DNA from: Bugula neritina
Lineage: Eukaryota > Animalia > Bryozoa
NCBI GenBank assembly: GCA_964035545.1
Contig: OZ037771.1
Span: 7,597,190 to 7,661,189, forward strand
DNA length: 64,000 nucleotides
Reading direction: 5' to 3'
Shown: positions 7,178 through 36,800 of the stretch, in pieces
Layout: every line of letters begins with the position of its first letter
Numbering within the stretch: the stretch's first letter is position 1
Program-made: the position numbers and the translations under genes
The notes under the pieces: generated by a model
What the model was told of the DNA's origin: nothing
Databases searched by the model: none
Seen by the model: the letters and a program-made list of their open reading frames with translations, nothing else

Positions 7178-7397
7178 CAACTCTGCACGCCTGAATAACC
7201 ACAACTTTAGGCTTGCCGGCCATGTTGGGAAAATTTGTAGAGTTAATGAGACTGTAGATCTGTGTTAGATAGACTGGCTGTGAGTCAACTCCATGAATCA
7301 TTCCATTAGCTCCGTGTGCAAACAGAAACAGGAAGAACATACCATAAGTGTTATGAATCTCATCTCTTGTCTCTGATTGAATACACTGTACTATCTC
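7178..7397 (-). CDS. Caspase p20 catalytic exon, copy 1
   Basis: FLFLFAHG (His codon 7314-7316) and GKPKVVVIQACR (Cys codon 7185-7187). Confidence 0.93.
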
Positions 7398-8834: not shown

Positions 8835-9359
8835 GAATATTCAACATGACATACAAACCTTTGAAGTGTTGATGAAGAGAGACTTGATACTCTGATTAGT
8901 AGTAGGAACTAGTGTCAACTTGGTAAGATCTTCTGAAGTGGAGGTAGTATCTTCTCCTTCATCCGAAACATCACTCAGTGCATCATCAGTACCAACAGTA
9001 TGAGTAGCAGCTCCACTGTGTCCAATATTATCTACATGTACAGGAAACATCACATAAACAGCTCACAGAAATGTAATGAAACCAACAACCTACAGGAACC
9101 ACTTCAACTGTCAATAACAAACATGGAGAATCAGAAAGGAAGAAAGCTATTTCTTATCGGTTCACTAGAAGTGAGTTTAATTCAAGATACCTGGTGGCTT
9201 GAAGTTGGTCTTCGCAAAGTCATTCAGTTTCTGCAGCTCATCTCCAGAAAGCTGGAAAGCTGCAATAGAAGTATGAATTATGGAAGTTGCTATTACTTGG
9301 ACAGTACATCACCATCTGAATATGCTATAAATAACCTGCCAAAAGATAATCATACTAAC

Positions 9360-11281
9360 TTGGGTGTAAAAGACAAGCTGGGACATCTCTGTATGTTCCA
9401 CATCTACCAGGTGATGAATCTGAAGTCATGGGAAGGGATTCACCATCCTCTGGAGTTCGACACCAGGATGGGTTGATGAACCTCTTTTGTCGTTTTTCTC
9501 CAACCAATGGGCAGTGGGCACACAAGTTGATACAGGTGATTTTACTTGCTCTCCATGTGGAGTTGACGTATTCAACGGTTGAATGAACTGAAGTGGTCAA
9601 CATCTTCCATGCATTGCCTATCTGCCGATAAGCAGACGTTATGGAGATAGTGAGTTTACGAGATTTGTAGTCATGCAGCAACTGCAGGGTGTAAGCTTCG
9701 TCTCTCAGCTCCACTCCATTCTTTCTCACAGCTTTTTCACTACAATCCTGGAGATCATTGAGAAGTTTTACAGAAATCTGGTGGTAGACGTACTGAGGGG
9801 GAGTCAAGCCACCAAACACCATGTCTACTGACAGTTTTACGGGTTGCCTCCTGGAGGCAGTCAAGTCGGTGAAATACTCCTGTGAGAAGTATGGCATAGT
9901 GTAACTTAGTTTCTGGGATGAATCCTTCATATCGAATAACAACTGGAAAGATTGTAGCAATGCGACTGCCACCTTCATCTTGTCACTCGTGGAGAAGCTG
10001 GTCTCTGCCATCACAAGATGCTGAAACAGCTTCTCGCTCATCCCGCCAGTTCGAACAAACTCTTGAGCCAAATTATTAAACTCCGTTTCATTTTCTATCA
10101 ACGGATTATTGAGTGAATCCTCTTCAATCGCGGACCGTCGATTTCTCCACACTTCCTTCTCGTGAGTGAAGAATACGTGGAGCAGCTTTGTAACCACGGA
10201 GATGTCGTAGAATACCAGAGACTGCAAACTCTCCCTATCCTGGTACCAGATGAGATGGCCGCTGTTATGCATGTACGAGAGAATCACTCTCAGCTGGTCT
10301 TCACTTTCCAACTTGCATTCAATGACATGTTGAAGCACTTCTGGAAATGTCTTGTAACTTCCATGGAATGAGTTGAATGTTTGAGCAACTTTTCTCCACA
10401 GAGTAGGCACCTTTTTCACGACTAGTTTACTGTCAGATAGGATATGACTTCTCAGCTGATCAAACACCTCTTCATATTCATCACCCACAACATATATATC
10501 TTGTTCTTGAAACATCTCTTGGCGCTGAAAATGAGAAATTCGTGTGAAAGAACGAAGATAATTCTTTTGACAATTTTCTTCTGATTGAATCAATTTGAAT
10601 ACACTTTCTGTGTGAAGAAAGAAGAGCCTCTTTAGCTCCTCAAATCCATCTGCACTGTAAGCATCTCGGTGAGTGAAAACCAGTTTGGGTGCTCTGAGCC
10701 CGGGATTGGCCAGGTACAGATGTGAGAGCCAATCAAAATATGTGCATCGAACTGCTTCATTACCATTCACTTCTAAACAGAGCTCTTCAAACTCCTTTAG
10801 ATTCACAACCACAATAGGAATACAGTTCTGTTTCAATGTGAACTGGTAGGTAGATTGGTAGATTTCATTGCCACCAAAATCTATGAACTGAAGAACAATG
10901 TCACCAACCACTAACTTTTCCATATTGAAGACACGAGTTGTTTCATCTTCCACTGCATCAGCCGCTCTATTGGTTAGTTCCCGTTAGCCGTCTGATCCCA
11001 CCAGCGTTTTTACTAGGCTGGTTTTGCCCGATAACGATCTACCCACTAGAGCGACCGTAGCTTCAGAAACTTCTAAATGACCAGACCTAAGATCTTCATA
11101 GTACTGTGTGATAGCTGGTAGTTTGTCTACACACACAGCATAAGGCGGGGATGTGAGTGATACACACCCTAAGCAGTTCAGTTCAGTCAGATTAGGCATG
11201 TTGAGAAGTTGAGGAGTTAAACATGTCATCTGAGAGTTGAGTGACAAGTCTAGGTGTTGGAGATTCTTGAGTTGACCAACA
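9360..11281 (-). CDS. Large exon of copy 1: last LRRs, Roc GTPase and COR (interrupted by one stop)
   Basis: P-loop ALVGRSLSGKTSL, G3 IDFGGNEIYQSTYQF, G4 VFTHRD, COR-like VPTLW and LSYMHNSGHLIWY; the ORFs 10984..11247 and 9355..10953 are in the same frame. Confidence 0.9.
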
Positions 11282-12928: not shown

Positions 12929-13061
12929 TATAATATATTGCAAGCTACAATCAGATTTATTCAAAGTTAGTAATCTCTATAGTTTATATAAAATAGATGA
13001 TCATATATGATATCTTACATGTTTACATAATAGTAGACAATATATAACTAATATAACTCAC

Positions 13062-13199
13062 CTGTCTGGTAATGTATGTAAGTCACAGTCCCATAGATGT
13101 AACTCTGTAAGTGACTCCATCTTTGGTATCACCTCAGGTAATGTTCCTAACTTATTACGAGACACCTCTAATGTGTGTAGATGTGTGAGTTGAGAGAGA
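13062..13199 (-). CDS. LRR cassette exon (2 x 23 aa), copy 1, exon 5 of 5
   Basis: SLSQLTHLHTLEVSRNKLGTLPEVIPKMESLTELHLWDCDLHTLPD; 138 nt, phase 2-2. Confidence 0.93.
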
Positions 13200-13438
13200 C
13201 TGTAATATACATACAATATACCATGAATATAATTATACAAGTTACAGAAATATTATGTTAAACATGTGGTAAGCTTTTATTATTTCTGCTTTGCAAGTAT
13301 GAATTGTGTCAGTTATTTGTGTTTAGGAATTCAATTCATAACTGGAGAGTTGGTATGCTGGGATTACTAGTTTCAGTTTTATTATACTATATTATATGTT
13401 TACATAATAGTAGACAATATAAAACTAATATAATTCAC

Positions 13439-13576
13439 CTGTCAGGTAAGGCAAGTAAGTCACAGTCCCCTAGACTTAACTCTGTAAGTGACTCCATCTT
13501 TGGTATCACCTCAGGTAATGTTCCTAACTTATTATAAGACACATCTAATGTGTGTAGATGTGTGAGTTGAGAGAGA
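13439..13576 (-). CDS. LRR cassette exon, copy 1, exon 4 of 5
   Basis: ...LDVSYNKL...LTELSLGDCDLLALPD; 138 nt, phase 2-2. Confidence 0.93.
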
Positions 13577-14372
13577 CTGTAATATACATACAATAAACAA
13601 TGACTATATTTATACAAGTTACAGGACTATTATGTTAAACATACTGTGAGTTTATTCTATACTGTTGCTTTGTAAGTATGGGTTGCCAGTTAATTGTGTT
13701 CAGTAAGGATAGCCAAAAGCGAATAGGCAGTTTCAACATGTGGCAAACATATAGAAAGAGTCCTGGTGGCGCAATGCTGACATCCTGTAGTTTATAATGG
13801 AAAGTAAAAAACATTCAAAAGATGGAAAACCTCCAGGTGTGGTGACGATGAAGAGAAGGGAAAGATCACAGAGAAAGTATACGGAGAGAAGAAAAAACAG
13901 ACGACAAACAAAATTGTAACAGCCAAAAAGAAAGGCATATGGGACAGTCTATGAATACCTACAAGAGATCGAAACAAAGAACCTATACACCTATATACCT
14001 ATAAGAACCTGTATATACCTAGATACAAGTTGGCCAAAACAAGAAAAAGACGATTATTGGATATTAATAGAATGACATTGTGACTATAATTCATCAGAAT
14101 GGTGACAGCATAAATGAGAATGTCGAGACAGATCTTTAGGATAATTTATGAGGAGCACATGGAAAATGATGTGATTAGATAACAGGTTGGGGTGAAATGA
14201 ATGTCTATAAACATGAGGAAAAACGTCTGCAGTGGTATTGCGATGTTTGCAGCAAAGATGGTGATATTAGCTTCAACTCCAATACATAAGAATCAATGGT
14301 ATAATGGATATGAAGAATCTAACAAATTGAAACATACAATATAATCTAACAAGAAATGAGGGTGGTCTAGGC

Positions 14373-16026
14373 CAGTGGCTCCCAACTTTTTTCCTACTAT
14401 TCCCCCATTTAATAAATGTTGACTACCGTATTAATCCCCCCCCCCTTTAGTAAAGCAAAAAAAGTTTCATGACTGACATGATGATAATATAGGATACAAT
14501 ACAATATAGTTTGTTCTATTAAAATATAATTATAATAGTAGTTATATTATCGTTATTATTATGTTATGAATGTATAGAACAAGGAGCAGTTCAATTTATA
14601 ATGATTCTTTTGTGCCAGCTTGCATAAGTCTGCATTGCTGTTTTTGGCCATGCCCATCTTAATTCACTCTGCAGATTAGGGCAGTTTCTCTTCTCTTTGA
14701 ATTAATGAGAATCCTACCTCACTTGGCAAGATGGCGCTGGGTGGCACCAAAATTCTAATTTTTCAGCTATGTGTGGGGAGAGTTTGCTTGTTAAAACCCA
14801 AAATGATTTTAGGTGAAAATGGCACAAATGGAGAAGTAGGTAAGACTGGCACACTGATGGTAAATTTTCCCAAACCCCCACCCCGGCCATCAAAATTGAA
14901 CCCCAAACCAAAACCTCCACCTTGTATTCAAGCCCAAAATCCTCACCTCAAATCCCACCCCCAAACTCCAAACCGCTCACCGCAATATTCAAAATGTGCC
15001 ATTTTTACACACTTTTTAATTTTTGCCATTATTACCTGTGCCTTTTATACCAGACACCACCCACAACACATCAATTAAAGAAGATTTGAAAAGAACCTTC
15101 ATTGCTGAATTGTAAACCAACTCAATGAAATCCTCTTGTAATTCCTCTAGATTTTTTTAACAGAACGTTGCAATAGGTCACATGTCAAGCTAAGAATCTA
15201 GCTCTTTCTTTTTGAGAGGTAGCTCAGAAAAATATTGTTAAAACTCCAATAAAAGTTCAGAGAGATCCGAAGAAGTTTTTTTGAGAAAGAACCTGGAACA
15301 GGTGGTGTTTGGTAAAAGTGGCACAGGTAGCAGTGGCACAGGTAGTAGTGAAACAAATGTAAAATTGGGTAAAAATGGCACATTTTCAATATTAAAGTTG
15401 AAGATTTGGGGTTGGGGGTTCAAGATGGAGGGTTTCGGGTTCAGCATGGGGGTTTGAGAAAATTTAACACCAGTGTGCCAGTTTTACTTAAAATCAAAAC
15501 AGGTTTTTTTCCTAAAATAGTTCATGGAGTGTGGGGAAAGACACCATATCTTTGATAGACGCCACAACTTTAGTGTAACTTTGAAAACATTGATGCTGCA
15601 ATGCAAAGCAATGATAGGATTATTGCACTCCTGTATTTTTAGGTTCAGATTAATTAGTGTAGCAAATATAGTCACTAGGTATGATACTTGTATTATGTAT
15701 GTATGGTAATTTATAGAGATTGGCTTGCTTAAAGTTGGCCTATTGGTTTTTGCAAACTTTTTGACATCCATTCAAAGTAGTTCAGAGAGCAGTCAGGGTA
15801 GAGTAATTAATAAACACATTCATGTTGAAGTGAACTGAGATTGCAGAATATAGTTTGGTTTAATAGATCAACTAGAATGAAGGTTTATAGATATGCATGT
15901 ACATGTAACATGCAAGAGCTCAAAAAAGCCTTCAATAAACTGCGTGAAGTTCTTAAAATCTAAATCCCCCCTGAAAAGCCCAAACTCCCCTCTAGGGGAG
16001 AATTCCTTCCAGGCTGGGAACCACTA
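14373..16026. mobile_element. hAT-type element, same family as 4969-6621, opposite orientation
   Basis: Ends CAGTGGCTCCCA / TGGGAACCACTA; TSD GTCTAGGC/GTCTAGGT; the same insertion is at 36711-38364, so it predates the duplication. Confidence 0.85.
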
Positions 16027-16414
16027 GTCTAGGTGAAAAGGGTGGGAGGTTTGCTTAAGAATAATATCCACTTTATCACTGGAGAATTAGTATGGTGGGA
16101 CTACTATCATCATTTCTGTTTACTCTATTATATATGTACATAGAATTAGAACACAGAGAGAATGTAATATACATACAACCTTGGTGATTAGAGTTTAGAC
16201 CAGAGTAAATATGGGAAGAATGTGCTTTTTAAGAGATTAGATGATTCAGTGTAACAAATTGCTAAATCAAAAACAGTTGTAACAATTTTCTATTTGAGAA
16301 TAATATTCACTTTATTACTAGATAGTTGGTATGCTGAAACTATGAGTATCAGTTCTGTTACACTTTATTATATGTTTACATAATAGTAGACTATATATAA
16401 CTAATATATCTCAC

Positions 16415-16552
16415 CTGTCTGGTAATGTATGTAAGTCACAGGCCTCTAGATATAACTTTGTAAGTGACTCCATCTTTGGTATCACCTCAGGTAATGTTCC
16501 TAACTTATTATGAGACACATCTAATGTGTGTAGATGTGTGAGTTGAGAGAGA
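16415..16552 (-). CDS. LRR cassette exon, copy 1, exon 3 of 5
   Basis: ...LDVSHNKL...LTKLYLEACDLHTLPD; 138 nt. Confidence 0.93.
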
Positions 16553-16798
16553 CTGTAATATACATACAATAAACCATGACTATAATTATACAAGTTACAG
16601 GTATATTATATGGTAGATATGCAGTGAATCTAAACTATTATTGCCTTGTTAGTATGAACTGGGTAAGTTATTTGCATTTAAGAATTATATCCATATTATC
16701 ACTGGATAGATGGTATGCTGAGATTACTAGTATCAGTTTTATTATACTTCATTATATGTTTACATAATAGTAGAACATATATAACTAATATACCTCAC

Positions 16799-16936
16799 CT
16801 GTCTGGTAATGTATGTAAGTCACATTCCCGTAGATGTAACTCTGTAAGTGACTCCATCTTTGGTATCACCTCAGGTAATGTTCCTAACTTATTATGAGAC
16901 ACATCTAATGTGTGTAGATGTGCGAGTTGGGAAAGA
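16799..16936 (-). CDS. LRR cassette exon, copy 1, exon 2 of 5
   Basis: ...LDVSHNKL...LTELHLRECDLHTLPD; 138 nt. Confidence 0.93.
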
Positions 16937-17179
16937 CTGTAATATACATACAATATACCATGACTATAATTATACAAGTTACAGGAATATTATGTCAAAC
17001 ATTTTGTGAGGTTATATAAGGTGAAGAACAAAAACAAGGAATGAGAAAAACACAGCTAACTGCCTGAGACTTGGAACTTTAATAACCCTCCTAGTTGTTC
17101 CAAACTTCAAGCTTCCTGGCCACTGCCAATGGGCCATGCAATTTCCAGGTGATGTAATGCTGTGCAATGGATAGGCAAA

Positions 17180-17900
17180 TAGAGTGATAGGTTAGAAGAA
17201 CAGAGAAAAGAAAATTAAAAGATGGTGGACTAAACCTGAGCAGAACCAAGACCGAGTACATGCTACCAGTGAGAATAGATAACAAGGAGAAGAAAAAATA
17301 CTATAACTGAGATAACTACAGTGATCTGTCTGAGACTAGTGCTTTCAAATGTCTTGCAACTATAATAAATCAGAATGGTGGGTTGTAGCCTTGAAGTAGC
17401 TAGGAGGATTGGAGTGGCTTGAGACAAGTGGAAGGATCTCTCAGAAGTGCTGTGTGATAAGAAGGTATCGATTAAACATACAGTACTTCTGTTTAGAATA
17501 TCCATTCAGTATGGTAATGAAACCTGGTCAGTTACTCATGGGATGGAAGACGGGATGAAGACAGTAGAAATGATACACAATTTTGGGATGACCTACGAGG
17601 AGCACATTGAACATGTGATTAGATAACAGACTGAGGTGAAACGAATATCTACGGACATATGAAGACAACTGCAACAGTATCGACATCTTTGCAAGAAAGA
17701 AGAAGATGATATTAACCTCAATTAGAATGTATAAAAATCAATGGTATATGGAGATATTAAGAATCTGACAAATGGGAACATACTATAAAATATATCAAGA
17801 AGTACTGGAGCCTTAAGCAAGAAGAAGTCCACAGCCGAGTGTGATTGAGCTGGGAGATTGCAGAATGGCTACCTTGCAGGACTATAGTCAGTTAGGTGAG
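17180..17900 (+). mobile_element. Decayed RTE-like LINE fragment in an LRR intron
   Basis: Remnant peptides GLNLSRTKTEYM, WKDLSEVLCDKKV, YGNETW; related degraded sequence at about 14050-14360. Confidence 0.55.
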
Positions 17901-17976
17901 AAAGGCGAAAAGTTGTGTTTAATATTATACTAATCTCTACAGTTTAAGTAAAAGCAGTGAACATGTTATGACTCAC

Positions 17977-18114
17977 CTGTCTGGTAATGTATGTAAGTCA
18001 CAGAACCGTAGATGTAACTCTGTAAGTGACTCCATCTTTGGTATCACCTCATGTAATGTTCCTAACCTACTTAGAGACACATCTAATGTGTGTAGATGTG
18101 TGAGTTGGGAGAGA
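17977..18114 (-). CDS. LRR cassette exon, copy 1, exon 1 of 5
   Basis: ...LDVSLSRLGTLHEV...LTELHLRFCDLHTLPD; 138 nt. Confidence 0.92.
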
Positions 18115-21100
18115 CTGTAATATACATACAATAAACCATGACTATAATTATACAAGTTACAAGAATATTATATTAAACATACTGTGAGTTTTTATTATTT
18201 CTGCTCTGCAAGTATGAATTGTGTCAGTTATTTGTGTTTAAGAATTCAATTTATAACTAGAAAGTTGGTATGCTGGGACTACTAGTATCAGTTTTATTCT
18301 ACTCTATTATATTTTTACATAGAATTAGAACACAGAGAGAATACATACAAAATAAGCAATTAGACCAAAGCATATATGAGAAGAAAGTGCTTCCTAAAAG
18401 ATAAGATGATTTGTTTGTAACAAATTGCTAAATCAAAAGCAGTTGCAATAATTTTCCTGTAAAGATAATATTTAAGATGGGTTTTACTCTGTATGACTCA
18501 GTTTTGCTGCCAAGGCAGCCACCTGAGAATTGCTGATTACAGAAGGAGAGTAAATAACTGGAGATAAAAAAAGTAGATAAATCTCTGTATTTTCAACTCA
18601 CTTAAACTTGACTGTGGTGCAAGTAAATTGTGATGCAGTATAAAACTGGTCATATGTGTGATAGTAGCTGTAAGGCAGGCAATAACAGGTAGGCCTAAAT
18701 AATGAAAAGTCCAACAACTACTTTGAGATAATAAGAATAAAGTATTCACAACCCTGGACTAAGTATAAAGTGATTATAAAAGCTGGAGATACAATTGAGA
18801 TAATGCTGATAGGTAGGAAGGGAGATCTTATTTCAGAGTGACTCTAGATTATGACTCATCTGTATATATAAACTATAGCTGTGTTCTGAACATATTAAAT
18901 ATAGTTGATTGTTTTACTCCATATTTCACTACATCTAAAAATATAGAAATTCTTCCCATGATTTTAGCAACTCAAACAACTTCTAAAGCACGGATAATAC
19001 ACTAGAAGGAACGAAGACAAAACTAATAGCAGTGAATACTTTGAAGAATATGAAACAAACTTAAGGCTACCAGCTCTGCAAGTAATATTATATTTGATTT
19101 GTGATTTCCTTAATGAATATTTAGCTATCCATTTCTCTACTGGCAGAATAAATATTAAAAGTTATCCCCACATGCAGGTAATCAGCTATAATGTGTGAGT
19201 CACCAGAAGTCATTGTTGACCTCTTCCCCAGCAGCCTCAGCTCAAACTAATATAATTCTATTCAAGTACAATAATGGAAAAAATTCTATACTTTTCAAAT
19301 TCGATTATTTATTGGGGGTTTGGTTGAACATAATTTAGTTTGCACTTTTTCTCATCAAGCACACAGACTTTTCCAAAATTCCTCTCTTACTGCACCCACT
19401 TTTACAATTCAAGGAAAACAGAATGACTACTCAGGTGCAGTAGAGATATGAAGGAATATTGCTGACATGCCATACAAGTATAACTCACCAAACACTTCAG
19501 CATTTCGGTAAATAGTCAATGAGTTACAACTGAAATACTGACAGCTAAATACACAACTCAAGTATATATAATTATCCAAAGAGAAGTCATGCTCTAGAGG
19601 ATAGAGATATTGTGACCTTAAACATGTTGATAACAAAGTGATGATAGACTTACTATTCTAAACTGTTGATACTGGTTAGGTGTTGAATACACAAGGTAGT
19701 TACAAGTGGAGCAAACTCTGTAACAGCAGGTGGGAGATCTCCCTCTATGCTTAGGTCAGTGATCACATGACCTGAACAGAGCTTCTTTATTTCCTCCTTT
19801 GTATAGAGTTTTGCAGATTGGTGGAACAACTCTTCTTTGTTAATAGGATCCATACCAGAGTGCCTCCAGCAACACCTGTATTTCTCTGCTAATAACAAAT
19901 GATCTAGTTTTTAGTATATACGTACCCAATTATAGAGTAAATATAATATCACCTGGTTTATAGTACATTTATCTATGTTAAAATTCTAGTAGTATAAAAT
20001 ACATCATTTTACTGTTGAATTACTTATATAATAATTAAAAATATAATCCAGCAGTAAATATATTCCTATATTCAAAGAGACAAACATACTAATAGTTGAG
20101 TCATCAACATGAAGATTGATAGGAATAAAACTGAGAATTTCTTCAACTTTTTATATCAGGTAGACTGAAAACAAATGAGAAACTTATCTGATAGACAATG
20201 CTGATGTTTCTATTTAAGATTTCACATACAACATGTTGATAAGAAAGTACTAGCAAGTATAAGAAATGGCAAGAATTAGAAATAAACCTGTTTTTAATGT
20301 CATCCAAAAATTTATCAACAGCTTCATTAAGCTACATGCAGATAAAAGTCACAGAAAATGTACAGAAACACCAAAGTATAAATATAGTTCAGAGAAGAAA
20401 CTTAAAGGGGGATAACAAAGTCTTTATTTTTAACTTTCAAGCTGGAAGATTCAATTGAAACCTATTCAGGTATATTTAAAGAATACTGTATTCAGGTGTG
20501 TATTTTACCATTCTCCAGACTAACTAATATTGTATACGGACCTGTTTGTGAAGTTGCTGCTGTTACATCATCCTCAGAACTGGTTACAGAGTTGGTAGCC
20601 ATGTTGTTTCTAGTATCAGATACTACAATGTAATACTAATGTATGTAATATGAATAGAGTATGAGATAGTATACAATGTATGTATATTGAGTGAAAAGGT
20701 GTGTGGAGGAAGTGGAATAATAAACAGTAGAGAGATAGCCAAGTAAAACACAGGTAAGGTGAACCAAGGAACATATTCATTTATAGCATTTTCATTTATT
20801 TATAATTTTCAATATAAATTGCATTAGCATTTTCAGCCATTGATAATTTATAGCATTTGATAATTTGTGACATACAGTTTTAATCAACAAGTTTGACAGT
20901 AGGTTGGCTTATATGTTTGAGACAAGATTATTGAATATTGCATAAGAGTTGGTTTAGGACAAGAGGAAATATCTAGTTTGACAACTTAGTATATTTCATT
21001 TCATTGTTTAACAGGTACTAACTACTAGAACAAAGATTGATTTATTAATGATAATGGAAACTGTGAGGACAAGCATCAATAGTATTCTAATAGTAATTTC

Positions 21101-24894: not shown

Positions 24895-27800
24895 CTACCA
24901 CTCTCCATAGAATAAAGGAAACAAGTAAATCTTCCTTCTACCAGTGAGAGTTTTTGTAATCACAGGAGTCTGTGTTACAGTACCTTCTGAGTCGGATCTG
25001 TTACCTGATATTTTCCTCACTCTTTCTTGTACCTTTAAATATTTCATATTCAGGTAAACATTGGTCAGTATTACTGACACTACAGCAAGAGTTAGAATGT
25101 ATTGCATCTGTAAATTCATCTACTAGTAAAAACTGTATTTGTGAATAGCAAAATTATATATACAAATAGTAAATTTATATAAAATTCAATTATATTGATA
25201 TTGAATAAAGTGGAGACTACATAACTAACACCATAATATACTGTGATGGTATTACTATACGACAGTATCTCATGACTATAACATAGTATGATTATAGTAT
25301 ATTGTAAAATATTTGTGAAGGAAAAATTCCATTTGCGTGAGAATGACTATATTATACTATGGCTATATATTACTATGACTATACTATACTATGACTATAT
25401 TATACTATGACTATATCATACTATGACTATATTATACTATGACTACACTTTACTATGACTATATTATACTATGACTATATTATACTATGACTATATTATG
25501 ACTATATTATACTATGACTATACTATGACTATATTATACTATGACTATACTATGACTATATTATACTATGACTATATTATACTATGACTATACTATACTA
25601 TGACTATATTATACTATGGCTATACTATGACTATATTATGCTATGACTACACTTTACTATGACTATACTATACTATGACTATATATTACTATGACTATAT
25701 TATACTACGACTATACTATACTATGACTATATTATACTATGACTATACTATACTATGACTATACTATACTATGACTATACTATACTATGACTATATTATA
25801 CTATGGCTATACTATGACTATATTACACTATGACTATACTATACTATGACTATACTATACTATGACTATATTACACTATGGCTATACCATGACTATACTA
25901 TACTATACTATGACTATATTATACTATGACTATATTACACCATGACTATACTATACTATGACTATATTATACTATGACTATACTATACTATGACTATATT
26001 ATACTATGACTATATTATACTATGACTATATTATACTATGACTAAACTATACTATGACTATATTATACTATGACTATACTATACTATGACTACATTATAC
26101 TATGACTATATTATACTATACTATGACTATATTATACTATGATTATACTATACTATGACTATATGACACTATGAAAAAACTCACGCAATTTTATAGTCGC
26201 TATCCCTGTGAGAAAACCCCTGATGGAAGGGGTTTTTGTTACAGCGGGCTAAGGACTTATTTAAATGAGGCACAGAAGCAATTATGACTATACTATACTA
26301 TTACATGACTATACTATACTATGACTATACTATACTATGACTATATTATACTACGACTATACTATACTATGACTATATTATACTATACTATGACTATATT
26401 ATACTATGACTATATTATACTATGACTATACTATGACTATATTATACTATGACTATATTATCCTATGACTATATTATACTATGACTATACTATGACTAGC
26501 CACTACAACTATACTATTATGACTACACCACACCAACTAATACGAAAACAGCCTCTTCTAAATAGGAAATGATGTCACAGGAAGTTACTCACAATATCAA
26601 ATAAGTCAGCAAGATCACGATGACAGCCATGTCTGTGTAAAGTCCTGACAAGTGTTCTTATCAATAATGACCCACCATCATGGAATCTCATGGAAGCACT
26701 GTCTGTTAAAATAATACAATGAGTTAAATAGTAAATATTATACAATGTATAGTAACAGTAAGTGACACTTTGCAGTAAAAACTAGTGAGAAATGCAAATT
26801 GAAAATTTGAAAACTGCGTTATTTCAGCAACGAAAGGTATATCTTGAGAAAGTCACATGGCTGGTGGGTTTCACAACTACTGGATGGTGATTGGGAGTTG
26901 TGGCCTATGATTTAGGTGAATAGGGATTAACCACACAGAATTTTTTGTAACTTAATCATCTCATTTTAAATAAAAAAACATTCAGCTAGAGAAAATACTT
27001 AGCCGAGTATTTTTAGGCAGCAGAGTATAAACTGTACAGACTAGTGTATCACAGATTAAATGAAAACTAGATAACTGTAACTCGCACACAAATAGTCTAT
27101 GTACTCAGTTCAGGTTTATGAAAGGTCATGTGATTAGACAGCACAGCACAGCTGCTAATTGCAATATTATTCTATTTGTTACTAATTTTCAATTGAATAA
27201 TGGATTTGCGGTTTGAAAATTTTGGAAGATAATACCCTGAGCAAATTTTCTTAATAAAATTATCCCATTCCTAAGAATGATGCCAGAAATACTGGCTTCT
27301 ATCAGTGGACTAAATTCTCACTTTCAAAGCAGGAGTGAAGGATTAGAAGGTCGTCAACATCAAAGTTCCTCTGTCCAGTTGAAGTCTCAGCTTCCTGTTG
27401 ATGAGTTCTGAGAGCAGAAAGTTCTGGTGAGGAGGAGTTGGTACTCTGTTGAATATTCTGTTCAGTTTGACTGACTGAGTTACCTGATTGATTAGTAACA
27501 CATGTGATATACCAACCAGTATTCTATGTATATGTATGAAGACTAGAGTATCATATAATACAGTATTACAATAGTATAATATATTCTTACTCGTATCATA
27601 TCTACACTCACCAACTCTGCACGCCTGAATAACCACAACTTTAGGCTTGCCGGCCATGTTCGGAAAATTTGTAGAGTTAATGAGACTGTAGATCTGTGTT
27701 AGAGAGACTGGCTGTGAGTCAACTCCATGAATCATTCCATTAGCTCCGTGTGCAAACAGAAACAGGAAGAACATACCATAAGTGTTATGAATCTCATCTC

Positions 27801-30800
27801 TTGTCTCTGATTGAATACACTGGAGTATCTCCTGTATATGAATATAACACAACACACACAGTATACAAACTCAGTGTGAGAGAGTCTATTCTATGAACAG
27901 GACTGACCAGCTCTAATAAACATACACTTCTATACAGTACAGAGAGAATACAAGTAAAGACAACTCCTGAGACTACATCCATATATTCAGTGTGAGTGTT
28001 GGGAGAAGAGAGAATTATTTCCTTCAGTAATTGCAGCTCAGACACAGAATGAAGCAAACATACAAACATAGGGGGAGGGGGGGGGGAGTGCGACCCAACC
28101 ATCTGTCAACATCATCTTGCAGAACAAATGCAATCAAAATATAGAGACAAGCAAGCATGTTTTTCCCCGTCTCATACTAGCCTTTAGAAAGTTAGCTCTG
28201 TGAAGCAAACGTTAGCCCAAAAGCTAAGAGTTTGCATTTCCCTAACTTAATAACTGATTCAATAGACAAGTCTACAGGCTATTATAACAGTGAAGTGAGA
28301 CATTAACCACTAATAACTAGTCACACTACGTGATAAGAAGAGGGAGACAACTACAAGTAAATAGAAATATACCTCAGCTGTGAGATCCTTCTGCTTCACA
28401 ACCTCAAATCCCATCTTCCTGAACAGAGCAAATGTGTTGTCAACATCATAACTAGAGCCAAGTCTCTCTCCTCCATTTCTATACTTGTTGTTGTTTATAA
28501 TCAGAGCTCTTCCTCTGAATGGACTCGTCATCTTGTATATCTGTAGATACAGACTATGTGATTAGTTTAGTACTTACTGGGTACATTCTATATGGAGAAT
28601 ACAATACTGAATAGAACACAATTGACCTGTTCATATTATATTATAAGCAACTGAAGAGTAAAAAATCATCCATGAGTAGACTAATATGGTTTCGGGCATA
28701 TTGTGTGGCTTCTGCTAACCAGAACAGTACTAGGAAAATTGAAAGTATAACCTAGCAGTTTGTTTCATAGAATAGTAACCCATCATTCACACTTAACGCA
28801 CAGTAGGCTGTAACAACAAATATCAGCCATTTTTACAAATGTCTGAACTTCCTGTATGGCGTTGCGGTACGTAATCAATCACAAACAAGCACTGCTTAAT
28901 TCAAAAATGTTGGGCGCACTTCTATTGGACAGAAAAATTTTTGCGTCAACGCATTGCATATAATTGTCCAATGAGGTGTCATAAACCATACTTAATAGCA
29001 GATTTTGAAAACTTCAGCCCGAACACATCAAAAATGGCTGATATTGTACGCTATGGGTGACGGTACAGTAAGCGTGAATGAGGGGTAAATCAATCACAAG
29101 ACTGTTGAAGGAAGGTTATTTCAAAATCACAGTAAAGTTGTTAATATATAGTGCTAGAAATAAGGTGACATATTTTTGCAATTAAGACAGCTGGTAAGTA
29201 GTTGACCAGATGAGAGTGGAAAGAAGAGCCAAGGCTATACAGAGACAATAGAGAGGAGAGCCAAGGCTATACAGAGACGGAGAGGAGAACCAAGGCTATA
29301 CAGAGATAACAAAGAGGAGAGCCAAGGCTATACAGAGGTAAAGAGGAGAGCCAAGGTTATACAGAGATAACAGAGAAGAGAGCCAAGGCTATACAGAGAT
29401 AATAGAGAGGAGAGCCAAGGCTATACAGAGATAACAGAGAGGAGAGCCAAGGCTATACAGAGATAACAAAGAGAAGAGCCAAGGCTATACAGAGATAACA
29501 GAGAGGAGAGCCAAGGCTATACAGAGATAACAGAGAAGAGAACCAAGGCTATAGAGTATTCAACATGACATACAAACCTTTGAAGTGTTGATGAAGAGAG
29601 ACTTGATACTCTGATTAGTAGTAGGAACTAGTGTCAACTTGGTAAGATCTTCTGAAGTGGAGGTATTACTTTCTTCTTCATCCGAAACATCACTCAGTAC
29701 ATCATCAGTACCAACAGTATGAGTAGCAGCTCCACTGTGTCCAATATTATCTACATGTACAGGAAACATCACATAAACAGCTCACAGAAATGTAATGAAA
29801 CCAACAACCTGCAGGAACAACTTCAACTGTCAATAACAAACATGGAGAATCAGAAAGGAAGAAAGTTATTCCTAATCAATTCACTAGGAGTAAGTTTAAT
29901 TCAAGATACCTGGTGGCTTGTAGTTGGTCTTCACAAAATCACTCAGTTTCTGCAGCTCATCTCCAGAAAGCTGGAAAGCTGCAATAGAAGTATGAATTAT
30001 GGAGGTTGCTATTACTTGAACAGTACATCACCATCTGAATATGCTATAAATAACCTAAGAGAAGATAATCATACTAACTCGGGTGTAAGAAACAAGCTGG
30101 GACATCTCTGTATGTTCCACATCTACCAGGTGATAAATCTGAAATCATGGGAAGGGATTCACCATCTTTTGGAGGTCGACACCAGGGTGGGTTAATGAAC
30201 CTCTTTGGACGCTTTTCTCCAACCAATGGGCAGTGAGCACACAAGTTGACACAGGTGATTTTACTTGCTCTCCATGTGGAGTTGACGTACTTTACGGTTG
30301 AATGAACTGAAGTGGTCAACATCTTCCAAGCATTGCCTATCTGTCGACAAGCAGACGTTACAGAGATAGTGAGTTTACGAGATTTGTGGTCATGCAGCAA
30401 CTGCAGGGTGTAAGCTTCGTCTCTCAGCTCCACTCCATTCTTTCTTACAGCTTTTTCACCACAAGCCGGGAGATCATTGAGAAGTTTCACAGAAATCTGG
30501 TGGTAAACGTACTGAGGGGGAGTCAAGCCACCAAACACCATGTCTACAGACAGCTTTACAGGTTGCCTCCTGGAGGCAGTCAAGTCGGTGAAATACTCCT
30601 GTGAGAAGTATGGCATAGTGTAACTTAGTCTCCGGGATGAATCCTTCATCTCGAATAACAACTGGAAAGATTGCAGCAATGCGACTGCCACCTTCATCTT
30701 GTCACTCGTAGAGAAGCTGGTCTCTGCTATCAGAAGATGCTGAAACAGCTGCTCACTCATCCTGCCAGTTCGAACAAACTCTTGAGCCAAATTATTAAAC

Positions 30801-33800
30801 TCCGTTTCATTTTCTATCAACGGATTGTCAAGTGAATCCTCTTCAATCGCTGACCGTCGATTGCTCCACACTTCCATCTCGTGAGTGAAGAACACGTGGA
30901 GCAGCTTTGTGACCACAGAGATGTCGTAGAATACCAGAGACTGCAAATTCTCCCTATCCTGGTACCAAATGAGATGGCCGCTGTTATGCATGTACGAGAG
31001 AATCACTCTCAGCTGGTCTTCACTTGCCAACTCGCATTCAATGACATGTTGAAGCACTTCTGGAAATGTCTTGTAACTTCCATGGAATGAGTTGAATGTT
31101 TGAGCAACTTTTCTCCACAGAGTAGGCACCTTCTTCACGACTAGTTTACTGTCAGCTATGATATGACTTCTCAGCTGATCAAACACCTCTTCATATTCAT
31201 CACCCACAACATATATATCTTGTTTTTGAAACATCTCTTGGCACTGAAAAAGAGAAACTTGTGCAAAAGAGCTGGAATAATTCTCTTTAGAATTTTCTTC
31301 TAGTTGTATCAAATTGAATACACTTTTGGTGTGGAAAAAGAACAGCCTTTCTAGCTCTTCAAATCCATCTGCACTGTAAGCATCTCGGTGAGTGAAAACC
31401 AGTTTGGGTGCTCTGAGTCTAGGATTCGCCAGGTACAGATGTGAGAGCCAATCAAAATATGTGCATCGAACTGCTTCATTACCATTCACCTCTAAACAAA
31501 GCTCTTCAAACTCCTTTAGATTCACAACCACAATAGGAATACAGTTCTGTTTCAATGTGAACTGGTAGGTAGATTGGTAGATTTCATTACCACCAAAATC
31601 TATGAACTGAAGAACATTGCCACCAACCACTAACTTTTCCATATTGAAGACACGAGTTGTTTCATCTTCCACTGCATCAGCCGCTCTATTGGTTAGTTCC
31701 CGTTTGCCATCTGATCTCACCAGCGTTTTTGCTAGGCTGGTTTTGCCAGACAGCGATCTACCCACTAGAGCGACTGTAGCTTCAGAAACTTCTACATGAC
31801 CACCAGACTTAAGATCTTTATAATACTTTCTGATAGCCGGTAGTCCGTCTATACACACAGCATAAGCTGGAAATGTGAGTGATTCACAGTCGTTGCATTT
31901 CAGTTCAGTCAGATTAGGCATGTTGAGAAGTTGAGGAGTTAAAGATGTCATCCGATAGTTGAATGACACGTTCAGGTGTTGGAGATTCTTGAGTTGACCA
32001 ACACTACCAAGTAAGTATACAGTATAACTTTATTATTATTCTATATCAAATGTATTATGCTTAAAAGTAAAACTTGATTAAATACATAATAGTTAGTATC
32101 TAACATAGCCTGGGAGAAAAATAGTGTTTGACAGCAAAACTGTGGCAAATGACTAGAACACAGGCCAAACTGTAAAGATAGACTATAATGATTATTTGAC
32201 TTAACAGTACAACCATTACAGTGGAAAATTGAATATTGATCCAAAATTTGCAGATTTTATTAAATTTCAAAACTTTGGATCTACTATAATACAATTGCAA
32301 TATATGGAAATTGTATTATTGCAAAATTATTACAGCCATTCGTAAATGTTTTGACACCTGCATATGCTTTTTGCAGCTTTGATAAATGGCAAAACAGAAT
32401 TTTCAATCTCCTAATAATTCAAATGATTTAAAGTTTTGTTTTGTTTTGTTTTCTTTATTTCCATCAAAAAAAAACAAAAGGACAAAAAAATACAAATATA
32501 CAACAGTAACACAAAAAGAGCTAAATTCAATTTATATATAATATCAATCGAAGTCAAGATGGGGGCCCATGTGCTCAGTAGCATAGCTATTCAAGGAGCG
32601 GGGCCCAAGTGGCAGTTGAAAAAATAGTGGGAACTATTAATTCAGATTAAGTTAAAGATTTTAGTAGGTGCTTTTTCAACAATATTTTAAATGTGGCAGA
32701 GCTTTGATGATGTCTTAAAGTCAGAGGTAGCTTATTCCAATTGCTAGACATCTGGTAGGACACTTGACGATGACCTGCTGCGGAGGTAGAGAGAGGTAAG
32801 GGTAAGGAAAGTTCAGAATGTCTGGTGAGGTAAGTTGGTGGTTGTTTGGTGTGAGATGGAGTATAATAAGCTGAATGACCAAGAAGACATAGGCGGTAGA
32901 TATACAAGAGATCAATAGGAAGAATTTCTGCTTTGATAAATAGAGGTGACGTGTGTTCAGTAGGTGATTTGTGGAAAATAATGCGAATAATGCGTTTTTG
33001 AATTAAAAGCAACTTGTTCAGATGGGTTTTAGGGGCATTTCCCCAGGCTTCTAAGCAATATGTAAGTTTGCTGTTTATCAGACTGTTATATAATAAAATC
33101 AAAGCTTTGTATGGTAAAAACTTTGAAGCTAAGTATATCATACCAGCTACTTTGTTGAGCTGAGCCCTTAAATAATTTATATGAGCACACCAGTTTAAGT
33201 TAATGTCAATGACTACACCTAAAAATTTTATTTCTGAGCTAGGTGAGAGAGGTATATTGTCAATATGGATGGTACTGTTAAATACAAAATTCTTTTGGTA
33301 GTTTTTAACAATGATATAGTTTGTTTTCGTTAAGTTTAGAGTTAGTTTGTTTGCAATGCACCAGTTATTAACTTTATTTAGTGAGGAGTTTATATTTCCA
33401 AAATCAGCATTTAAATCTTTGCTCTTCCAAAAAAGATTCGTGTCGTCGGCAAACAGAATAGTATCAAATAAAGGACAATGGGTAGCTAAATCATTTATGT
33501 ACAGCAGAAAGAGCACAGGGCACAAGATAGAGCCCTGGGGAACTCCACAGGTGATATGCAAGGAATTGGATATACTGTTCTCTATTATAACATGCTGTGT
33601 TCGATTGGTCAAGTAGTTTTGGATTAAACTTATGGAGTGAGAATCAAAATTGTAATCTCGTAGTTTCTGTAGCAAAATATTGTGGTTGATTGTATCGAAT
33701 GCTTTTGAGAAATCAATGAAAATACCCAATATTACTAATGAGTCATTAAGTGCTTTGAAGGATTGGTCTGAAAACTTAAACAGTGCGTCTTGTGCACCCT

Positions 33801-36800
33801 TCTTCTGTTGGAAGCCAAATTGAGAAACCGACAAAATTTTGTGTAGGTTTAAATGTTCATTTAATTGGTTGCAGATTATTTTTTCAAGTATTTTAGAGTA
33901 AACTGGAAGTATTGAGATAGGCCGATAATTACTACATAAAAGTTTGTCACCTTTATTTTTGTAAAATGGCAAAATCTTGGCTACTTTCAGTTCATTAGGA
34001 ATGACACCTGATTTAATTATCAAGTTTATAATGTGTGAGAGGCTGACAAAGGTAAGTTGCACTTTGTTTAACTAGCCTCGCTGGGATCAAGTCTAAGCCT
34101 TCTGATTTAATTTCATTCAAATTTTTTATTTCAGTTAAAACTCTGTTTTTGTCTACCAGCTGAAAATAAAATGAAGGACAATCTTTGGCATTGACTGGGA
34201 TCTCAGGAACACTTGGTATTTTATCGGCTAAGTTCTTTCCAATGTTAGTGAAATAATTGTTTATATAGTTTGCTATTTCTGTATGGTGGATAATGATTTC
34301 TGAGTCAGCTTTTAGCTTTACTGGGAAGCTTGGAGAGGTTGATTTTCTTCCACAAGCATTGTTGATTGTAATCCTAAACTGTTGCATATGGTCTTGTATG
34401 TTGTCTACTAATCTAACTAAATATGTTTAAATAATAACTGAATACATTAAAATGGATAAACTATATTTGCTCCAAGGAGCTGTTGAGCTGAAGTAAATTT
34501 TCAAGTGGTTTTTACCTATTTAGATTAATTTTTGCCTCCAAACCATTGTACGTTCAAGGCAAAGTACTGTATTGTGAATGAATGTTTACAAAGTTTCAAC
34601 CTGGGAACAAACATTGTGCAACCCAGAATGAAACTGTATTACAGACTGAGTAAGCAGCAATGACATAATATACCTCGCAATTCCACTATTTCTCTAAACT
34701 CGAACTTCACTTCTTTATGGTGAGTGGTGGAAGACAAAATTTTAGTAGACAGCAGCTATCAAACTAAGAAGTACTAAAAGAAAGAAGTAATTGGGTTTGG
34801 TTTTGCAGCATTACAGGAAACTGGGGAGTGATTTATGGAATGTCATGACATTGGTGATTTCATACTTAAAATTGGCTCATGAACATTGGCAAGACTTGGT
34901 AAAATAAAAGTTTTTGATGGGTAAATTCAAGCTGCCAGCTGCGTGGAGATTATGCAAAAAAAATAACTTTAGAGAAAGTAGAAAAAAGGTACTTTCTACC
35001 ATACTTTCCTTGTAAAAGAGAGAAAGTTCAATGTTTCAGTGGCCCATGCAAAAGTTAAAACATATTTATAGACAATACAAAGAAGAGTGGTCACCTTTGG
35101 TCACCTTTCACCGCCGTGGTCCTGCTGGTGGCGGGTAATACAAAGAAGAGTAGCTGAGAAAAAACCAACTGACATGGTCAATTTAGCTAGAACTGTCATC
35201 AATGCAGGTACAGGATGTGAGATAAACCACAAAATCAGCTGTGCTAGTGGAGAATATGTCAGCCTACTGCCTAGCAGTCATTGGTGCTAATAGTTACTCA
35301 CTCACACTGAAACACTGATATGTTATGTGCAAGAATCTTTTCACACACAAAAACATCTCATTGTACAATCTTCTTCATTTTGCTAACCAACTAAAGAGAA
35401 AATTTCAAATCCTACGTAAATATGTTTCAGTGCAAAAATTGATGGCAAAAAGCTTTTCAGCATTTTTCTATTGATAAGCTTATGCTATACAACAAATAAC
35501 AATGATCTAGAGTTGTAGCTCAGCCAATAAGTTGCGTTTCATATATATATTTAAATATTTTAAGCATGTAAAAATTCAAAAATTGCAAACAAAGAAGTAA
35601 ACTGGTAAACAATTTGGGGGTGTCAAAGCTTTTACGAATGGCTGTATATTATATTGCAAGCTACAATCAGATTTATTCAAACTTAGTAATATTTATAGTT
35701 TATATAAAATAGATGATCATATATGATATCTTATATGTTTACATAATGGTAGAACATATATAACTAATATAACTCACCTGTCAGGTAATGTATGTAAGTC
35801 ACACTTCATTAGATATAACTCTGTAAGTGACTCCATCTTTGGTATCACCTCAGGTAATGTTCCTAACTCATTAAGAGACACAACTAATGTGTGTAGATGT
35901 GTGAGTTGAGAGAGACTGTAATATACATACAATAAACCATGACTATAATTACACAAGTTACAGGAATATTATGTTAAACATACTGTGAGTTTATTCTGAA
36001 CTGTTGCTTTGCAAGTATGGATTGCCAGTTAACTGTGTGCAGTAAGGATAGCCAAAATAGAATGGGCAGTTTCAACATGTGGCAAATATATAGAAAGAGT
36101 CCTGGTGTCCCAATGCTGACATCCTGTAGTTTGTAATGGAAAGTAAAAAGTATTCAAAAGACGGAAAACCTCTAGGTGTGGTGACGATGAGGAGAAGGGA
36201 AAGATCACAGAAAAAGTATACGGAGAGAAGAAAAAACAGACGACAAATAAAATTGTAACAGCCAAAGATAAGGCATATGGGACAGTCTATGAATACCTAC
36301 AAGAGATCGAAGCAAAGAACCTATACACCTATATACCCATAAGAACCTGTATATACCTAGATACAAGTTGGCCAAAACAAGAAAAAGACGATTATTGGAT
36401 ATTAATAGAATGAAATTGTGACTATAATCCATCAGAATGGTGACAGCATAAATGAGAATGTTGAGACACATCTTTAGGGTAATTTATGAGGAGCATATGG
36501 ACAATGATGTGATTAGATAACAGGTTGGGGTGAAATGAATGTCTATAAACATGAGGAAAAACATCTGCAGTGGTATTGTGATGTTTGCAGCAAAGATGGT
36601 GATATTAGCTTCAACTCCAATGCATAAGAATCAATGGTATAATGGATATGAAGAATCTGACAAATGGAAACATACAATATAATCCAACAAGAAATGAGGG
36701 TGGTCTAGGCCAGTGGCTCTCAACCTTTTTCCTACTATTCCCCCATTTAATAAATGTTGACTACCGTATTAATCCCTCCCCCCTTTCATAAAGCAAAAAA

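Follow-up and report, generated by a model that had tools for sequence, protein, structure and literature searches.

The part of the Bugula neritina genome described here is, with high confidence, the modular LRR part of tandem LRR-Roc-COR-caspase (ROCO-caspase) genes, which germline recombination has reshaped under diversifying selection. It is built of repeated exon units that, together with their proximal flanks, are 90-99% identical among units and among paralogous genes, and at this level of identity non-allelic homologous recombination and gene conversion would be able to add, delete and recombine cassettes. The window (the whole 64,000-nucleotide stretch that was analysed) holds two copies of the gene that differ in cassette number, together with the caspase exons of a third.

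Tandem ROCO-caspase genes and their cassette exons

The gene copies lie in tandem on the minus strand (Table 1), and their nearest annotated proteins come from B. neritina itself, in whose current gene models the cassettes are either left out or placed in a separate gene model. Searches for domains and similarity were run exon by exon, rather than on a joined spliced coding sequence or protein, and on the central exon of copy 2 they returned Roc (PF08477, 30.0 bits against a Pfam cut-off of 27) with a recognisable P-loop, GRSLSGKTSL. Roc is followed, in the expected order and place, by candidate matches to COR-A (30.8-31.9 bits, E 1e-7, under the curated Pfam cut-off of 35.3) and COR-B (17-22 bits, E 2e-4 to 5e-3, under the cut-off of 27), and COR-A is also present in the precomputed Pfam list of a B. 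neritina homologue. The Pfam search of the same exon for NACHT or NB-ARC gave no match, Roc and COR being found instead. Peptidase_C14 (PF00656) was identified at 51.2 bits against a cut-off of 21.4, with the p20 catalytic His and Cys motifs, and the motifs FAHGANG and IQACRV occur in all three window copies. By analogy the ROCO-caspase gene would be NLR-like in its working, yet it is not a member of the NLRs. Roc-COR exons of the family number at least 70 across the genome and cassette-like matches at least 150, and one distant member has 15 canonical 138-nt cassettes in phase 2-2.

The LRR arm consists of the N-terminal exon, a variable number of cassettes and two LRRs inside the Roc exon; a regular-expression search of the stretches that separate the cassettes from the adjacent exons found no extra canonical LRR exon. 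Each cassette encodes two LRRs of the typical 23-residue class, with the LxxLxLxxNxL core recurring at period 23 (LRR_1 at 23.5-26.5 bits against a cut-off of 20.6, and LRR_8 on the first copy-2 cassette at 28.9 bits against 27).

Table 1. Positions in the window of gene exons, cassettes and relic cassette units; c1.1 to c1.5 and c2.1 to c2.2 are the cassettes of copies 1 and 2.
Feature	Position	Strand	Remarks
Copy 1 N-terminal exon	19654..19910 (5' limit provisional)	minus	ends ...INSLE plus TA, donor gtaagt, phase 2
c1.1	17977..18114	minus	two-LRR exon; hypervariable signature DLHRF
c1.2	16799..16936	minus	1040-nt intron upstream, 246-nt intron downstream
c1.3	16415..16552	minus	positional homologue of c2.1; followed by the 2838-nt L intron
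c1.4	13439..13576	minus	first after the L intron
c1.5	13062..13199	minus	last cassette; its intron runs to the Roc exon
Copy 1 LRR-Roc-COR exon	9358..11281	minus	single exon with two LRRs, Roc P-loop, COR-A and COR-B; acceptor tag, phase 2
Copy 1 caspase exons	6868-8120	minus	equivalents of the copy-2 Peptidase_C14 exons
Copy 2 N-terminal exon	55446..55720	minus	16.5-kb Polinton-holding intron before c2.1
c2.1	38750..38887	minus	exon at 99% identity to cassette 3 of paralog g6
c2.2	35778..35915	minus	chimera; hypervariable signature VL|YMK
Copy 2 LRR-Roc-COR exon	30077..32003	minus	open over its full length
Copy 2 caspase (Peptidase_C14) exons	27305..28543	minus	catalytic motifs AHG and QACRV
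Copy 3 caspase exons	62244-63475		equivalents of the copy-2 Peptidase_C14 exons
Relic unit, intron upstream of c1.1	18244..18456	minus	same deletion as the relic at 16066..16290
Relic unit, copy-1 L intron	16066..16290	minus	both flanks kept; acceptor AG changed to AT; about 150 nt deleted
Second copy-2 relic, upstream intron	39006-39241	minus	adjoins the deletion junction
Relic unit, copy-2 L intron	38390..38609	minus

Seven cassette exons of 138 nt lie in the window, all on the minus strand. BLAST with the cassette at 13062 recovered six further full-length cassettes, four in copy 1 (13439, 16415, 16799 and 17977) and two in copy 2 (35778 and 38750), with E between 1e-85 and 1e-135; counted with the query, they agree with the five against two cassettes given in the preliminary description. 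All seven are free of gaps, open and bounded by intact AG/GT sites, with ...attacag before the exon and gtga... after it. For example, the cassette at 13062-13199 translates from offset 1 as LSQLTHLHTLEVSRNKLGTLPEVIPKMESLTELHLWDCDLHTLPD, its first base ending a codon and its last two bases opening one, hence phase 2-2. The symmetric phase earlier ascribed to every cassette holds throughout the window and beyond it, and the repeated intron strings quoted as flanking the cassettes were recovered, conserved at every exon; conservation extends for ca. 70 nt upstream and ca. 60 nt downstream. Each cassette forms with its intron of ca. 246 nt a repeat unit of ca. 380 bp. As phase 2 is likewise the phase in which the N-terminal exon ends (copy 1, 19654; copy 2, 55446) and the Roc exon begins (copy 1, 11281; copy 2, 32003), any number of cassettes can be gained or lost in frame.

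Two features of the gene copies had been overlooked previously. The Roc exon of the five-cassette copy carries a premature in-frame TAA at 10986-10984, where copy 2 has AAA, and we infer that copy 1 is a recent pseudogene; the introns of copy 2 host a Polinton of 15 kb as well as a non-LTR retroelement.

Cassette turnover among paralogs

The genome-wide subfamily comprises 40 cassettes in nine close paralogs, which carry 2, 3, 4, 4, 5, 5, 5, 6 and 6 cassettes each as assembled, although individual counts could in principle be mis-assembled. All 40 are exactly 138 nt long, open, bounded by AG/GT and in phase 2-2, and no two encode the same peptide. The introns between them fall into classes (U, M, M', S, L and D) that are arranged in a different order from gene to gene: with c for a cassette, copy 1 reads U c M c S c L c S c D, copy 2 reads U c L c D and the paralog a2 reads U c L c M c D. 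A further, different intron order was found in a five-cassette gene of an independent B. neritina assembly in GenBank. We considered this contig as an allele or haplotype and rejected it as such; it is 88-92% identical and has no clear orthologue, and so represents variation between lineages rather than polymorphism.

Alignment of copy 1 with copy 2 gave three blocks (12422-13322 with 35137-36038, 13388-16777 with 35727-39111 at 94% identity, and 17972-18866 with 38745-39650), which bear out the earlier claim that copy-2 exons 35778 and 38750 carry hybrid flanks. Upstream of exon 38750 (c2.1) the switch falls at ~39029 when measured against copy 1 and at 39048-39087 against the closer paralog g6, so that the position near 39035 proposed before was essentially right, our mapping placing it at ~39030-39090. 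The join with the upstream (U) intron lies ca. 142-200 nt 5' of the exon: the sequence shares 95-100% identity with the upstream intron of g6.1 until about -200 to -161, then 93-100% with g6.3. The second copy-2 cassette (c2.2) switches within the exon itself, resembling g6.4 and c3.6 to about exon base 99 and a2.3 from about base 60-100 onwards, and this switch recombines hypervariable residues. More generally, the closest relative of a cassette is not constant across its upstream flank, exon and downstream flank. The four-gamete test was failed by 34% of informative site pairs, a figure to be read with the caution that recurrent mutation at hypervariable sites may mimic recombination, and a PHI-type test gave p = 0.0055. 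The proposal that recombination between cassette units had already changed the array is upheld by the range of two to six cassettes per gene, the shifts in intron order, the chimeric c2.1 and c2.2 and the PHI-type result. A narrower origin, with c1.4 and c1.5 as a recent tandem duplicate of c2.2, was considered and rejected; neither resembles the other more closely than it does the remaining cassettes, and c1.5 has an upstream flank of the first-cassette type, which also speaks against it.

The introns also hold relic cassette units, which the preliminary description had missed and in one of which, upstream of c1.1, its end coordinate of 18330 falls. In the relic of the copy-1 L intron the deletion spans the greater part of the exon and runs into the start of the intron, and one identical deletion is common to relic units in two intron contexts.

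Diversity in the exons is concentrated at codons 11, 14, 34, 36 and 37, where dN/dS is ~6.6 compared with 0.36 at the other 40 codons, as estimated by a pairwise count method rather than a recombination-aware site model. These codons are the x positions of LxxLxLxxN, and their assignment to the concave face rests on that motif only. Synonymous diversity is 0.07 in the exon, as against 0.137 in the short introns and ~0.2 at the intron centre.

Variation in count and order, the mapped chimeras and the signature of selection together make germline unequal crossover and gene conversion a well-supported reading of these sequences. Copy 2 would have lost its first cassettes through a crossover in which the 3' flank of a relic in the upstream intron recombined with that of a normal cassette, and its last cassette is the product of recombination inside the exon. 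Diversifying selection would maintain differences at five concave-face residues per cassette, the remaining exon being homogenised. The direction of each change, loss or gain, is suggested by comparison among paralogs rather than with an outgroup.

Alternative sources of cassette diversity

Combinatorial use of cassettes by alternative splicing, giving each gene several LRR arms by exon skipping, is possible but we regard it as doubtful. Phase 2 is kept throughout, in the cassettes and in the N-terminal and Roc exons, so that every skip would be in frame, the splice sites are almost the same in all cassettes, and precedents exist in brown-algal ROCO genes (PMC11378527) and in human NLRP3 (PMC6642158). 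The symmetric phase, however, is equally the condition under which duplications survive. A search for a spliced cassette-cassette junction, such as a retrocopy or cDNA-like contig would carry, gave no match in the genome when up to 2 mismatches were allowed and none in metagenome contigs, a weak and nearly uninformative result. Set against the docking and selector RNA pairing of Dscam, the short 246-nt intron folds no better than its shuffles (z = +1.35, a measure of folding only). Still less probable is that the subset or order of cassettes expressed varies among the zooids or cells of a colony, through stochastic exon skipping or somatic recombination; if true, each of at least 70 germline ROCO-caspase genes would yield several sensor arms, and a colonial invertebrate would have an individualised repertoire of immune or allorecognition receptors coupled directly to a caspase.

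Tandem repeats of 90-95% identity within 20-kb segmental duplications are a classic site of mis-assembly, and the difference of five against two could reflect a 380-bp repeat collapsed or expanded by the assembler. We consider this very unlikely, as the cassettes differ from each other by 1-10% and have introns of distinct classes between them, among them unique ones of 1 kb and 2.8 kb, whilst copy 2 has clean junctions, 97-100% identical to other paralogs, and similar variation recurs in nine genes and in the independent GenBank assembly. Least probable of all, to the point of near dismissal, is somatic rearrangement of cassettes within an individual or colony, whether lamprey VLR-like or by unequal recombination: its sole support is that tandem, near-identical units offer a possible substrate, but the cassettes are ordinary spliced exons of germline-complete genes, each with its own acceptor and donor, so that somatic assembly is not needed, 40 of 40 lie inside genes and in gene orientation, incomplete germline genes flanked by donor cassettes that lack splice sites were not seen, and the diversity observed lies between paralogs fixed in one assembly.

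Comparison with known systems

To our knowledge, bryozoan immunity has hardly been studied, and our literature search found no paper on the LRR-Roc-COR-caspase family. We infer that ROCO-caspase proteins are one-piece intracellular sensors, in which ligand binding by the LRRs would trip a Roc-COR switch and so activate the caspase, and the family looks like a one-piece analogue of the inflammasome. The family combines a modular, recombining sensor arm under diversifying selection with a fused caspase as effector. To this the window adds mapped recombination junctions, one of them intra-exon, and exon-deleted relic units as a recombination substrate.

In lampreys and hagfish, the VLR genes are incomplete in the germline and are assembled somatically from donor cassettes without splice sites. 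VLRs resemble the genes described here in their LRR cassettes, their hypervariable concave residues and the diversity gained by combining cassettes; the bryozoan genes, in contrast, are complete in the germline and their cassettes are ordinary exons, which makes lamprey-like assembly unlikely.

Among prokaryotes, the Roc-COR-CHAT proteins of Runella gasdermin systems likewise join a Roc-COR switch and a caspase-like protease (there CHAT) in one piece, and LRR/AP-GTPase-COR conflict proteins share the layout of fast-evolving N-terminal LRRs, a GTPase-COR switch and a C-terminal effector (PMC8195603; bioRxiv 10.1101/2021.06.07.447441). The role of these systems is defence or cell death. They are, however, bacterial and have no exon cassettes because they have no introns, and the likeness is one of shared domains.

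The LRR exons of vertebrate NLRs, NLRP3 among them (Hoss et al. 2019, PMC6642158), are strictly modular two-LRR exons with a constant boundary in the repeat and may be lost or gained in frame, and they too form the sensor arm of a nucleotide-switch protein with caspase activity as its outcome. In contrast to the bryozoan cassettes, they are 171 nt long and encode RI-type LRRs of 28 plus 29 residues, and they lie at the C-terminus rather than the N-terminus, on a NACHT ATPase rather than a Roc-COR GTPase; the vertebrate caspase is recruited via adaptors, whereas the bryozoan one is fused in the same polypeptide.

The nearest precedent is found in the LRR-ROCO genes of the brown algae Ectocarpus and Saccharina (Zambounis et al. 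2012, PMC3341825; Teng et al. 2024, PMC11378527), in which alternative splicing of LRR exons has been documented (PMC11378527). They share the LRR-Roc-COR arrangement, small symmetric phase-2 exons that carry the LRRs, recent tandem duplicates that differ in LRR number (13 against 17 there, five against two cassettes here), an LRR region that is a hot spot of recombination, positive selection on the concave face, and much gene birth and death with pseudogenes. Unlike the bryozoan genes, they encode one LRR per 72-nt exon instead of two per 138-nt exon, have no caspase where the bryozoan gene has Peptidase_C14 after COR, and are reportedly accompanied by orphan LRR exons that are intact and sit on the non-coding strand, compared with only exon-deleted relics on the coding strand in the bryozoan. 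As the same exon-cassette design occurs in unrelated lineages, a stramenopile and an animal, the use of phase-2 LRR exons by bryozoan and brown-algal ROCO genes appears to be convergent.

Gene layout and cassette exons

The leucine-rich repeat (LRR) cassettes of this stretch are modular phase-2 exons set in repeated flanks, their number and order vary between paralogous genes, chimeric junctions between them are mapped, and they carry a signature of diversifying selection. The AT-rich window (G+C ~33%; C7:7597190-7661189 of the 216-Mb assembly) holds one minus-strand gene as nearly three tandem units, referred to as copies 1 to 3. In each unit the N-terminal exon is followed by a run of 138-nt LRR exons, a ~1.9-kb exon encoding two further LRRs, a Roc GTPase and COR-A/COR-B, a linker, and caspase (Peptidase_C14) exons with FAHG and QACRV motifs. 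Homology searches, run exon by exon rather than on a joined spliced model, returned two partial Bugula neritina models as the nearest named proteins (87% and 93% identity), both without LRR cassettes. Together with DNA identity of 88-92% to a B. neritina GenBank contig, these matches mark the source as a bryozoan of that group rather than human.

In cassette c1.5 (cX.n being the nth cassette of gene X) only offset 1 is open, giving phase 2 at both ends of the 138-nt exon, and further full copies are present in copies 1 and 2. Every cassette is directly preceded by tgtatattacag and directly followed by gtgag or gtgaa, and encodes two 23-residue LRRs (Pfam matches LRR_1, LRR_8 and LRR_4). The N-terminal exon closes on two codon bases (TA, then gtaagt) and the Roc exon opens with the third after ...ttggtag; since the cassettes are phase 2-2 and these neighbours share that phase, any number of cassettes can be lost or gained in frame. 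This bears out the preliminary description, which held that every cassette could be skipped or duplicated without a frameshift, and the flank strings it quoted as duplicated were found, with conservation over all cassettes extending ~70 nt upstream and ~60 nt downstream.

Copy 1, with five cassettes, has an in-frame TAA in the Roc domain just past the P-loop (AAA in copy 2) within a Roc-COR exon that is otherwise open, and is probably a young pseudogene, unless the TAA is a sequencing error. The Roc-COR exon of the two-cassette copy 2 is open, whereas that of copy 3 is interrupted by a TGA just outside the window. Among the 70 listed Roc-COR exons, 4 contain a stop codon, and two of these belong to the nine close paralogs. 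Two copy-2 introns contain inserted elements: a non-LTR retroelement fragment, missing in copy 1, with an open 471-residue reverse-transcriptase ORF (RVT_1, E 1e-35), and a ~15 kb Polinton/Maverick (G+C 26-31%), which also encodes several paralogous ORFs of 160-180 residues.

Coordinates of genes, cassettes, relic units and inserted elements in the window
Feature	Position	Strand	Remark
Unit 1	~1-21629	-	Copy 1
Unit 2	21630-57421	-	Copy 2
Unit 3, start only	from 57422	-	Copy 3
N-terminal exon, last base	19654; 55446		Copy 1; copy 2
c1.1	17977
c1.2	16799
c1.3	16415
c1.4	13439
c1.5	13062-13199
c2.1	38750
c2.2	35778
Roc exon, first base	11281; 32003		Copy 1; copy 2
In-frame TAA	10986-10984		Copy 1
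Relic unit	16066-16290		L intron, copy 1
Relic unit	38390-38609		L intron, copy 2
Relic unit	18244-18456		U intron, copy 1
Relic unit	39006-39241		U intron, copy 2
~1.65-kb element	14372-16025; 36710-38364		L intron, copy 1; copy 2
~1.65-kb element, inverted copy	4970-6622		Downstream of copy-1 caspase exons
~230-nt fragment	14135-14355; 17571-17801; 36462-36693
Non-LTR fragment	32434-34368		Copy 2, last cassette to Roc exon
Polinton/Maverick	39650-54634		Copy 2, N-terminal exon to first cassette
Adenain-like protease	41659-42060		Polinton
Protein-primed-type polymerase	42057-44666		Polinton
Double-jelly-roll capsid protein	48341-49615		Polinton; PF21738, E 5e-58
rve integrase with chromo and PLA2-like parts	50957-52321		Polinton
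A32-like ATPase	52334-53092		Polinton

Signature of diversifying selection on the binding face

Searching the whole genome at the DNA level recovered exactly 40 cassettes flanked in this way; contig C7 carries all of them, within nine paralogs forming two clusters, and the comparison set was window copies 1 and 2 and seven further paralog loci. Each of the 40 exons is open, gap-free and 138 nt long, and every one is distinct. Variation is concentrated at codons 11, 14, 34, 36 and 37, with the remaining codons nearly invariant. These five are x positions of LxxLxLxxN/C, which we take from established LRR structure to form the concave beta-face. Pooled Nei-Gojobori values were pN 0.50, pS 0.11 and dN/dS 6.6 at the five hypervariable codons and pN 0.026, pS 0.07 and dN/dS 0.36 at the other 40. 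Synonymous sites in the exon are less diverse (0.07) than the short introns (mean 0.137; ~0.2 at the centre, ~0.05 at the ends), a pattern consistent with exon-centred conversion that homogenises the units while selection holds the binding-face codons apart.

Cassette arrays, junctions and the wider family

The genes of the cluster around the window have 4, 5, 2, 6, 6 and 4 cassettes, those of the cluster 2.5 Mb away 5, 3 and 5. The introns fall into classes U and D (upstream and downstream of the cassette run), S (short, 228-255 nt), M and M' (~0.8-1.4 kb) and L (~2.83 kb, containing a repeated element), and their order varies from gene to gene: U c M c S c L c S c D in copy 1 (c, cassette), U c L c D in copy 2 and U c L c M c D in the close paralog a2. 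The L-intron element is ~1.65 kb long, and its inverted copy downstream of the copy-1 caspase exons is 73% identical. The L intron shares a degenerate mobile-element fragment (~230 nt, 74% identity) with the M intron of 1 kb, which suggests that insertions into short cassette introns gave rise to the long ones.

The preliminary description held that recombination within cassette units had already altered the array, and the breakpoint analysis agrees. For example, the preliminary description gave c2.2 the left flank of c1.5 and the right flank of c1.4, and against copy 1 its upstream flank is indeed c1.4-like and its downstream flank c1.5-like. For c2.1 a switch had been placed near 39035; against copy 1 the sequence is c1.3-like downstream of ~-141 and further upstream that of the intron before c1.1, a switch at ~39029. 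With the closer paralog g6 as comparator, c2.1 is 95-100% identical to the g6 U intron until about -200 to -161 and, from -160 through the exon (99%) into the L intron, 93-100% identical to the third g6 cassette, so copy 2 looks like a g6-type gene minus its first two cassettes. The crossover interval, 39048-39087, lies within a stretch homologous to the cassette 3' flank, in the U intron as part of a relic unit. The c2.2 exon resembles g6.4 and c3.6 as far as ~base 99, while from ~base 60 on to +179 c2.2 matches a2.3 at 100%; the hypervariable signature of c2.2 (VL|YMK) joins the first half of c3.6 (VL|RRF) to the second half of a2.3 (DG|YMK). Judged from these alignments, c2.2 is a product of within-exon recombination that gave a new combination of binding-face residues. 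Over all cassettes compared, the nearest relative changes among upstream flank, exon and downstream flank. Within the cassette core, taken as the exon with 70 nt of upstream and 60 nt of downstream flank, the four-gamete test is failed by 34% of informative site pairs, and compatibility is higher for neighbouring than for distant sites (PHI-type permutation p = 0.0055).

Short BLAST matches at 16155-16178 and 38494-38517 led to relic units in which both flanks survive with little of the exon between them: the acceptor is now AT, seven exon bases are left and ~150 nt are deleted. The same deletion is found in the L-intron and U-intron relics, which indicates that array duplication also copied the dead unit.

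Genome-wide, Roc-COR exons number at least 70 (134 candidates) and scored cassette-like matches at least 150 of 640 candidates. In a distant member, L010 (G000:C6:4852500-4862400), 15 canonical 138-nt phase 2-2 cassettes recur every ~568 nt and are hypervariable at the same positions as those in the window; two adjacent ones, at L010 2786 and 3354, encode identical peptides, and one variant exon (~L010 5057) deviates from the 138-nt pattern. In a sister subfamily, L011 (G000:C1:350000-354500; Roc exon 65-67% identical), 138-nt two-LRR exons appear mixed with shorter single-LRR exons at ~240 nt spacing. The B. neritina GenBank assembly (GCA_010799875.2, VXIV02002257.1:42553-65689; DNA identity 88-92%) holds a gene of five cassettes whose introns measure 1055, 247, 248 and 305 nt. 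The public annotation of this assembly splits the gene into a 528-residue LRR model, which contains the cassettes and lies upstream of the second of the two partial models, and a 3' model consisting of the C-terminal part of the Roc-COR exon and the caspase exons; a further model, P0001, begins within intron sequence.

Origin of the arrays and known systems

Unequal crossover and gene conversion in the germline, acting within as well as between paralogs, most likely produced the array changes. The genes encode putative intracellular sensors, in which ligand binding by the LRR arm may act on the fused caspase by way of the Roc-COR switch. Alternative splicing could in principle skip cassettes, with brown-algal LRR-ROCO genes (PMC11378527) and NLRP3 (PMC6642158) as precedents; the spliced cassette junction had no match in the genome or in metagenome contigs, a weak negative, and folding found no special RNA structure in the short intron. 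Somatic assembly of cassettes, as in VLRs, is argued against by germline genes that are complete and cassettes that are each an ordinary exon.

We found no description of an LRR-Roc-COR-caspase family in bryozoans in the literature searched. The closest precedent is the brown-algal LRR-ROCO family (PMC3341825, PMC11378527): its phase-2 exons of 72 nt encode one LRR each, recent duplicates show intense exon shuffling, concave residues are under positive selection, and alternative splicing occurs. In human NLRP3 and other NLRs, two-LRR exons of 171 nt permit exon skipping (PMC6642158), and the one-piece logic is shared by bacterial Roc-COR-CHAT proteases and by LRR/GTPase-COR proteins that carry variable effectors. 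The bryozoan family differs from these systems in its animal lineage, its two LRRs per 138-nt exon and its fused caspase, and, where the brown algae have intact orphan exons, it shows exon-deleted relics.
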